Source: Lama glama (taxonomy: Eukaryota). From it: a stretch of 64,000 nt of DNA. The notes beneath the pieces are model-generated. The model had not been told where the DNA came from, searched no databases, and saw only the letters and a program-made list of their open reading frames with translations. Location: positions 46,562,001 through 46,626,000 of the forward strand of contig CM052851.1 of the NCBI GenBank assembly GCA_028534125.1. The letters run 5' to 3'. Shown one piece after another: positions 26,301-29,300 of this stretch (positions are counted from its first letter, which is position 1; each line of letters begins with the position of its first letter). The translations under genes were made by a program, and so were the position numbers.

Positions 26301-29300
26301 AGCAAAGAGCCACTGGCTTCCTACCTCCTTGTTGAGTTGGTCCAGAAGACAGAGGGTGAGCCATGATGCAGTGGTGGAAGCTGAAGGCTGCTCAGATGTC
26401 CTTAAAATATCAAGTGTGATAGCCGACCCTCCTGTTAGAAAGAAGGTAGATAATATTAAGTTTGAAGGTCTGCTGGGCAAACAAATGGGTCTATTGTTTG
26501 GAGTAAGAGAGGATTATACTTTTCAGTTCAGGCTCACCAATGTTCACTGAGCATCTATTATGTACCAGGTGTCACACTGTTCCTGAGTGAGCTGTACTGA
26601 GCTATAAAATTATAGAATATTGTTAGATCTGGAGGGAACATATGGGTCATCTACTTTTATGGATTTGGAAACTGAGGCCCCAAGAGGGAACCAACTTGCC
26701 TTAGGTCACGGATCAGGTTTTAAGCTGCTTTAAACACTTCTGCCAGTGTTTAAACATTTTCTGTCCACAGAGGGCCATTTTAATCCAGCATCTTATTTAT
26801 GACATGGGTGGTGTTAGGTGATCTGAAAAGGAGCAGGAGCTTATGGGTACATCCTCATTCAAAAGATAAGGACGCTGAGACCCAGAAGGGGACATTCCTA
26901 GGGTCCCAGAGTGAGTCTGTCGTAGAGCTTCTCTGCAAGGTTCCTCCTCCTCAGGCATCCCCAGCCCTTGGGCACCCCGTCTTTTGCCCCATCCTAGCAA
27001 GGCCCCTCATTAACCAGTTCCTGAGTCCTCAGTTCCTGGGAATGGCAGCCTTCTTTGCAGTCTGTGTGGTGCAGGGAAGCCTCCCTGGGTTGGCCCCAGG
27101 GCTCCTGGGCTCAGGTCTTAACTCCGCCGGTGGCTTGTTGTGTGGTATTAGCCAACTTGCTCTGCTTCTCTGAACATCGGTTTCATATCTTGTGGGATGA
27201 GGAAGATAATCCCCACCTGTACCTCGTATATGGAGGTGACGTGAGCATTACTTCTGTGAAGGCACTTTGTAAAATATGAGGCACTATCTGAATGCAAGGC
27301 ATTTTAAGTTAATTCTTTTACTATTAGCTGGTGCCAGATGAACGTATTCTCTCCCAGGGGACACACTTAACAAAGGCTTCTGACACCTTTGTCACTGACG
27401 CAAGTCCCTGGACTCTTTAATCAGTAGAAATTGATAAGAGGCCAGACAAGAAACTGAGGCAAGTCTTTTCTGGGACTCGTGCTGCAGCCCCGGGCAGCGA
27501 GAACAAGAAACAGGTGCCCTGCTGTTCCCTGAGTGGGGGCGGGCTCTTCCTTAAACAGGGCTGAGGGTGGGGGCAGGTCAGTGGGTGGGGCCAGAGGTGT
27601 GGCTTAGGTGGTCTGCCCATTCCCTTGGTGGTGCCGTGCGCAGGGGTCATGCGCAGTGCCCTGCTTTTGCTCCCGGCACCACAGAGACGGCAGTTTCTTC
27701 GTGGCCTTTTTGTATCTTATTGTTCATAATTGCCCCAACTGTGCCTGCGTGCAGTTATTTTCAGTCCTGTAGGGTTTCTCTGTAGTCCACTGCTCAAGGA
27801 GACGTTTGTCCAGCTGCAAGCCCTCAGGTAAGTTGTTTCAGGTCCCAGCCGTCATTCAAAAGACTAAAGCTGGCATTCCAGGCGCTAGGGTGGTTCAGTC
27901 AGGAAGGTGGCCCCTCTTGGGGACTGAGACCCCCTGCCCTCCTCTTTGACCCGGCCTGGAAGAGGGGGGCTGTGTAGCTGGGGAGACCAGTTCCAATTAT
28001 GGTTCTGCCCCTCACTTTCTCTGTGGCCTTGGGAAAACTGCTCTGTCCTCTCCAGGCCCCAGTGTCCCCCGCTATAAAATGGATGTGGTCGAATTAGGTG
28101 AATTTTGAGGGTCTTCCTGGCCCAGACCTTGTGGATTTGGGGAGGGGCTGAGTCCTGTCAGGGGGAGGCTGCCGAAGCTGGCGAGGTGTGACCGCTCTTT
28201 GCCGCTGCTCAGGCTTCCTGGAGAAGAACCGGGACACCCTGCACGGGGACATCATCCAGCTGGTCCACTCCTCCAGGAACAAGTTCATCAAGCAGATCTT
28301 CCAGGCCGACGTTGCCATGGTAATATTGGGGCAGGGATTTCATTGGGCGGGGGGGCCCCCAGAAGCAGGGCCTGTGTCTAGGTGCCCCCTTGTCCAAGAG
28401 CTTTAGCTGAGCTCCTCTGGCCGCAGAGCAGGGGCAGGGCTTTGCTGTGGTTCCAAGAGGGTCTATGGGTGCTTCTCATCCTCTTGTACTGATTGGGGGT
28501 GCGGTGCAAGGACCAGAGAAGTGTCACATGAGAGGTTGCAGAGCAAAGCCTGATCAGGACTTGGTTTCCTGTGGCGGGTCTCGACCTCCAGCAGCTAACG
28601 GAGCGCGGGTGAAGGAAGCACAGCCAGCCTAGAGGACGTGGATAGGTGTTCAGAGAAATGGGCACAAAAGGCATATTTGTGCCAGCCCGGGACCGCCTGG
28701 TGGGGTGGAGAATTTCCCACCCTTGACATTTCCCTTGTCCCTGGAGTGGTGATCTGGTGGCCCTGTTTCCAGCAGGATTATATGCCTTTTTATTTCATAG
28801 TTTCCTGCTGCCCCATGGCTTTCTGGAGAGTGTATGGAGGGGCTCACAGGGAGGGCAGAGCCATTGCCCCCTCAGTGCTTGTCCAGGTGCCTATGTTGCC
28901 CCCAGCGCCCCCGCCCGGAGCCTAGACCTCTGCCCGGAGGGTCCTCCTCTTCCCCTGGTGGACTTTGCCCTCCATTTTCTGACCCACCACATTCTCCTTG
29001 CCCCACACCCCATCTTGCCGTGCACGGCGGTTCCGGTTGTAGTTTCTCTGTGGTTACTCATCAGGCACCCTCCGCCAGTCAGCAGCTCCTGCAAAGGTAA
29101 AAGACCCTGGCCTGGGGCCCAAGGAGGTGGGAGAGGCCTCGGGGGCTCCTGGAGCTGGGCTGTGTCTTGGTCCCAGTGGCACTGAGGCTCGGGAAAAGGG
29201 CTGTTTTTTCCCTTCTTCATTTTGTTGGAGTGTTTGTTTTTGGCTTTTGTTTTATTTTTATTTTTATTTTTTTTTTGTGGAGTGGCTTGTGGAGTGGTTT

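Follow-up and report, generated by a model that had tools for sequence, protein, structure and literature searches.

We analysed a 64,000-nucleotide (nt) stretch of the Lama glama genome (GenBank assembly GCA_028534125.1, contig CM052851.1, positions 46,562,001 to 46,626,000 of the forward strand), referred to below as the window, and conclude that a 54-nt segment within it, at positions 29043-29096, is very probably the llama orthologue of MYO7A exon 15B, a cassette exon that cochlear hair cells splice in between exons 15 and 16. The window carries the MYO7A gene on its plus strand, and an exon map built with tblastn spans the gene from the exons for the N-terminal motor to those for the tail. 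The three features on which the identification turns are listed here, with a slash marking each exon-intron boundary in this and the following lists.

28213..28319, plus strand: canonical MYO7A exon 15, which ends ...ADVAM, GCC ATG/gtaata (from the tblastn exon map)
29043..29096, plus strand: candidate cassette exon of 54 nt, phase 0/0, 18 amino acids (aa), the proposed exon 15B orthologue (from the sequence and the literature)
35304..35441, plus strand: canonical MYO7A exon 16, cag/GGC GCG GAG, which starts GAETRKR (from translation and a match to solved structures)

The identification rests on agreement with an exon that is already in the literature. From a screen of deafness genes for exons missing from the annotation, based on single-cell RNA-seq data of mouse hair cells, Ranum et al. 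2019 (Cell Rep, PMC6424336) reported Myo7a exon 15B, which their Table 1 places at mm10 chr7:98,090,360-98,090,413, a length of 54 bp. The mouse exon lies between exons 15 and 16 and was reported as coding, open-frame and conserved, and as absent at that time from both RefSeq and Ensembl (PMC6424336). The exon turned up in 17 of 44 outer hair cells (P15) and in 13 of 31 inner hair cells, taken from 15 mice; its isoform was co-expressed with the isoform that skips it, and the reading frame is preserved in mouse and human alike (PMC6424336). The candidate in the window occupies the same intron (6,984 nt between exons 15 and 16, with the candidate starting 723 nt in), has the same length of 54 bp and keeps the frame without a stop codon, its boundaries reading tgtag/TTT CTC TGT ... 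GCA AAG/gtaaaa. It also shares with the published exon its coding status and its absence from the canonical isoform. Because gene, intron, length and frame agree, and because no other credible 54-nt exon is present in the intron, we take the segment to be very probably the orthologue. Whereas exon 15B was described in mouse and in the orthologous human region (PMC6424336), the llama copy is known by position, length and phase, from DNA alone. Our literature searches on loop 2, alternative splicing and MYO7A, and on pseudoexons, returned nothing on exon 15B. The first-pass annotation, made from the letters of the window, had proposed this same segment as a regulated cassette of sensory or neural cells that is absent from the canonical isoform, which matches the published hair-cell exon (PMC6424336); novelty of the variant is not supported, as the exon was already published in 2019. 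Its call was therefore right but not new.

The signals that flank the candidate were examined with splice-site scores from a rough position-weight matrix, and all scores given below are accordingly approximate. The signals are the following.

28940..29040, plus strand: AG-exclusion zone of 101 nt, 70% pyrimidine, with TCTT and TCCT runs (from the sequence)
29041..29042, plus strand: AG of the 3' splice site, in the context gttccggttgtag directly before the exon, weak and G-rich (score -3.9)
29097..29102, plus strand: 5' splice site AAG/gtaaaa, in the top 3.7% of GTs in the window (by the rough matrix)

The AG-free zone is bounded by an AG at 28938-39 on one side and by the acceptor AG on the other. 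By length this interval ranks 12th among the 4995 in the window that separate one AG from the next, and runs of N occur in 5 of the 11 longer ones. A branch-like TTCTGAC lies within the zone at 28977-28983, with its A at 28982, approximately 60 nt 5' of the exon; the zone also holds TGC at 28966, 28999, 29016 and 29021 and five copies of YCAY. The CpG observed/expected ratio was 0.58 at 28990-29100, compared to 0.24 across the intron, which gives an indirect hint, and no more, of conservation across placental mammals. Thus, the AG-free stretch, branch-like site, pyrimidine tract, YCAY and UGC motifs that had been described for 28940-29040 are all present as claimed, the CpGs are retained as was said, and the splice boundaries, the phase of 0/0 and the freedom of the 54 nt from stop codons are likewise borne out by the sequence. 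Regulated exons usually show this arrangement, in which a weak proximal acceptor sits behind a long AG-exclusion zone and a distant branch point. No repeats were found near the candidate in a repeat check.

We compared the candidate with other segments of the same form. The intron holds 23 frame-open 54-nt segments that run from an AG to a GT, and the best donor among them is that of the candidate; the best alternatives have scores of 2.5, paired with an acceptor of -9.0, or of -0.7. When an acceptor was required to follow 100 nt or more without an AG and to be paired with a donor at least as good, the candidate acceptor stood alone in the 64-kb window, by a criterion that was picked after the data had been seen.

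Several points weigh against the identification. G-richness of the last 25 nt before the exon makes the acceptor poor, and by the rough matrix its score is equalled by 33% of all AGs in the window. There are 9 frame-open AG..GT decoys within intron 15, and 65 within the whole window, that match both site scores of the candidate. By splice-site scores alone, the candidate is not better than chance. The reading frame, moreover, continues open past the donor, such that a version of 84 nt extending to 29126 is open as well, and the absence of stop codons from the 54 nt is therefore weak evidence. Finally, we infer orthology from intron, length and phase and not from an alignment to the mouse or human exon. 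A pseudo-exon arising by chance would account for these points: the AG...GT pair, the open frame and the pyrimidine tract would then be coincidental, the segment would never be spliced, and the real exon 15B would lie elsewhere in the 7-kb intron or would have been lost in this lineage. The weak proximal acceptor, the number of decoys and the open frame that runs well beyond the donor are all as such an explanation would have them. We nonetheless consider it very unlikely, since the intron, the 54-bp length and the frame are exactly those of the published exon, none of the other open AG..GT segments of 54 nt in the intron has a donor to compare with that of the candidate, and regulated exons typically show a long AG-free zone, a branch-like site and raised CpG.

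A second donor, GAG/gtggga at 29127, is in frame with the same acceptor and would yield the 84-nt open form (29043-29126, 28 aa); its score of 3.3 slightly exceeds that of the 54-nt donor, and exon 15B may use it as an alternative 5' splice site.

Having identified the candidate as a probable orthologue of exon 15B, we considered how its inclusion might be controlled. One further feature, located downstream of the donor, bears on this question.

29186..29330, plus strand: G/T-rich tract, 90-230 nt 3' of the donor, a candidate GU-rich intronic splicing enhancer (function proposed)

The tract is 84% G+T, contains GAGTG three times and TGTGG twice along with GTGTG/TGTGT, and shares first place for G+T content among all 140-nt segments of the 64 kb. 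RBM24 prefers GU-rich motifs downstream of the exons that it regulates. A cochlea-specific cassette exon of Myo7a is nearly abolished in Rbm24 conditional knockouts (PMC13099659; reviewed in PMC10018040), and RBM24-L raises inclusion in a Myo7a minigene (PMC13099659). The hair-cell exons that depend on RBM24, which include Cdh23 exon 68, Pcdh15 and a Myo7a exon, share a common plan, namely a weak cassette in an Usher or stereocilia gene with a GU-rich tract on its 3' side and a PTB-like pyrimidine tract on its 5' side, and the candidate resembles them. The RBM24-dependent Myo7a exon is not named as 15B in either PMC13099659 or PMC10018040, so the link between the two is one that we infer, and the G/T tract consists in part of low-complexity runs of T and may be a neutral microsatellite-like stretch; both points count against assigning the exon to RBM24. 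On balance, we give even chances to the hypothesis that RBM24 controls exon 15B.

The architecture of the exon suggests how such control might work. Exon 15B appears intrinsically weak, as its proximal 3' splice site is G-rich and its putative branch point and pyrimidine tract lie 25-100 nt upstream, behind the AG-exclusion zone. An exon of such weak architecture would be skipped by default and would consequently need a tissue-specific activator. The most likely activator would be one that binds GU, RBM24 for example, through the tract at 29186-29330. PTB-type repression in other tissues, by way of the upstream TCTT/TCCT tract, would also be possible.

The first-pass annotation had instead favoured SRRM4 (nSR100), and the same exon, if real, could depend on that factor, with UGC upstream of the 3' splice site as the activating element. 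Two of the TGC copies, at 29016 and 29021, do lie close upstream of the exon, at 27 and 22 nt respectively, with the pyrimidine tract on their 5' side and the AG on their 3' side. The 3-mer TGC is, however, frequent by chance, which makes it weak evidence, and the microexons under SRRM4 control are typically shorter than 54 nt, which counts against this alternative as well. SRRM4 is needed in hair cells, according to the Bronx waltzer paper (PMC3464207), but in the main text of that paper all 26 of 26 mentions of Myo7a refer to a promoter or an antibody marker, and none to a splicing target. Moreover, the regulator that published work names for a Myo7a cassette exon is RBM24 and not SRRM4 (PMC13099659; PMC10018040). 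SRRM4 control of exon 15B is thus unsupported, and we regard it as unlikely.

Also in intron 15, a second very G/T-rich stretch occupies 33664-34018. It reaches 84% G+T over 140 nt, resembles a TG microsatellite, translates to CVCVCV repeats and adjoins an N run at 33077-33224.

The position of the insert within the motor could be set against solved structures. In a 2026 cryo-electron microscopy study of mouse MYO7A, the loop-2 contacts with actin were residues G600-R606 of MYO7A-C, with 408 Å2 buried (PMC13396587). These residues are GAETRKR, the first seven of exon 16. Exon 16 of the window is 100% identical to the myosin-VIIa of PDB entries 9dfv and 9dfs, and its residues 9-45 align to residues 647-683 of chicken skeletal myosin (2MYS), directly after the classical loop 2. 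The earlier claim that the cassette inserts within actin-binding loop 2, where the upper and lower 50K domains join, is upheld by both the position of G600-R606 at the opening of exon 16 and the 2MYS alignment. Since GAETRKR opens exon 16, exon 15B is predicted to insert its 18 residues after M599 and before G600, on the N-terminal border of the segment that contacts actin. Ranum et al. modelled the insert in exon 15B as an unstructured loop near the actin-binding loops, and took its position to suggest a role in actin binding (PMC6424336, Fig. 4).

The llama insert carries a net charge of +2, with one Arg, one Lys and no acidic residue, and much of it consists of Ser, Thr, Gly and Ala. In other myosins, changes in the length or basicity of loop 2 alter actin affinity and actin-activated ATPase activity. 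By analogy, the insert, which would lengthen loop 2 and make it slightly more basic, may be expected to change both properties in MYO7A. The B2 and C2 inserts of non-muscle myosins IIB and IIC offer a parallel, as these are likewise tissue-restricted spliced cassettes that lengthen loop 2, at the 50K/20K junction. Their effect on ATPase activity is known for class II; they belong to a different myosin class, however, and their sequence is unrelated to that of exon 15B. The published MYO7A motor constructs were made without the insert, and exons 15 and 16 are never mentioned (PMC13396587).

We further compared the candidate with the paralogue MYO7B, for which annotated isoforms of birds and a lizard possess an optional cassette of 17-18 aa in loop 2 (SLSQCGFLLSRTSGHAQ in birds, SLSYRGFQSRTSPAALGQ in the lizard). 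The exon boundaries of these cassettes were deduced from isoform differences alone. The cassette directly precedes GLDTTKR or GSDTTKR, the counterpart of GAETRKR. The sauropsid cassettes thus occur in a paralogous motor, at the same position and with the same size as exon 15B, yet without significant sequence similarity to it. Another difference is that MYO7B has constitutive extra segments in loop 2 (…GRGTIRHLGADQAYK), which MYO7A is without.

The agreement in size and place, together with a CG[FY] motif common to both, raised the alternative that exon 15B is an ancient feature of class VII myosins and homologous to the sauropsid MYO7B cassette. However, 12% of pseudo-exon peptides taken from the window and 49% of shuffles attained the global alignment score of 10, while the match of GTLRQ to GTIRH in a constitutive loop segment of MYO7B was reached by 20% of the pseudo-exon peptides and 16% of the shuffles. 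In addition, fragments of insect and mollusc myosin VIIa have a short loop. We judge such homology highly improbable. We also rejected the idea that the 18-mer is homologous to loop-2 segments of MYO7B, its similarity to them lying within the range of chance. As the similarity is not above chance, homology is not claimed, and the shared splice position is retained as a lead. What this lead would amount to, and we consider it distinctly unlikely to hold as a whole, is that loop 2, just before G-x-[DE]-T-x-K-R, is a shared and possibly ancestral site of alternative splicing in class VII myosins, at which exon 15B, probably dependent on RBM24, would tune the actin binding of the tip-link motor.

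The MYO7B sequences were themselves variable at this position. Among proteins from bird, turtle, crocodile and lizard (P0151-P0269 and P0313-P0350), loop 2 occurred without an insert (FQ/GLDTTKR), with TTPPSLGRGTIRHLG, with ADQAYK, or with a cassette of 13, 17 or 18 aa. This variety suggests that several micro-exons lie between the MYO7B counterparts of exons 15 and 16. One Polypterus senegalus protein (P0097), named unconventional myosin-VIIa, had MYO7B as its nearest relatives in a word search and a long loop 2; the VIIa name looks wrong, or the protein is a divergent paralogue. Searches for homologous proteins seeded with P0067 and P0097 returned MYO7B and not MYO7A. A query with the protein sequence of exon 16 returned genomic fragments of open reading frames that read into introns, with no transcripts and no junction information, and a query of protein representatives with a tail exon gave matches that were mostly fragments.

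Other observations concern the remainder of the locus. A tRNA-like element lies on the minus strand of MYO7A intron 15 at 31954-32025 (Rfam tRNA, 54.6 bits; called by ARAGORN as tRNA-Ala, anticodon GGC). It was the sole match in an Rfam scan of the intron, and most probably represents the head of a short interspersed element (SINE) derived from a tRNA and not a gene. Five runs of N, of 132-212 bases and representing either masked sequence or gaps, are present at 20745-20876, 25232-25443, 25730-25876, 33077-33224 and 43364-43511. Toward the 5' end of the gene, an open frame at approximately 4806-5015 (MEPSAHAAESDNPADPADPADPAEARAKQPGKWALLRSLNQALKTYAVLP) corresponds to the first exon of MYO7A-N. 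Table 1 of Ranum et al. also includes a coding transcription start site exon, "Myo7a exon 2B" (PMC6424336); this may be the same exon, in which case its first report would date to 2019. Lastly, several runs labelled as RNA-Seq or metatranscriptomic ('reproductive system metagenome') were compared with a 1.25-kb stretch that is mostly intronic; they contained a constant share of its words, about 0.42, and their contigs amounted to 0.8-0.9 Gb. The pattern suggests that the genome or pre-mRNA of a relative diverged by about 3% is broadly covered, rather than that MYO7A is expressed.

MYO7A is the gene of Usher 1B, DFNB2 and DFNA11, and is a target of gene therapy. The exon 15B insert adjoins loop-2 residues that bury approximately 400 Å2 on actin. 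The exon was nevertheless not taken up in the papers that we searched on MYO7A isoforms, structure and kinetics, the constructs used for cryo-electron microscopy and ATPase measurements in 2026 being without it, and it may be missing from diagnostic panels and replacement constructs as well. About the gene itself the window adds nothing new; it places the splice signals of the exon, its AG-exclusion zone and its GU-rich 3' tract in another mammal. A real exon of the unannotated kind was here recovered by the first-pass annotation from sequence alone, although the discovery itself belongs to 2019. If loop 2 does prove to be a shared site of alternative splicing in class VII myosins, exon 15B would be a motor variable that has so far been absent from structural and kinetic work on MYO7A.

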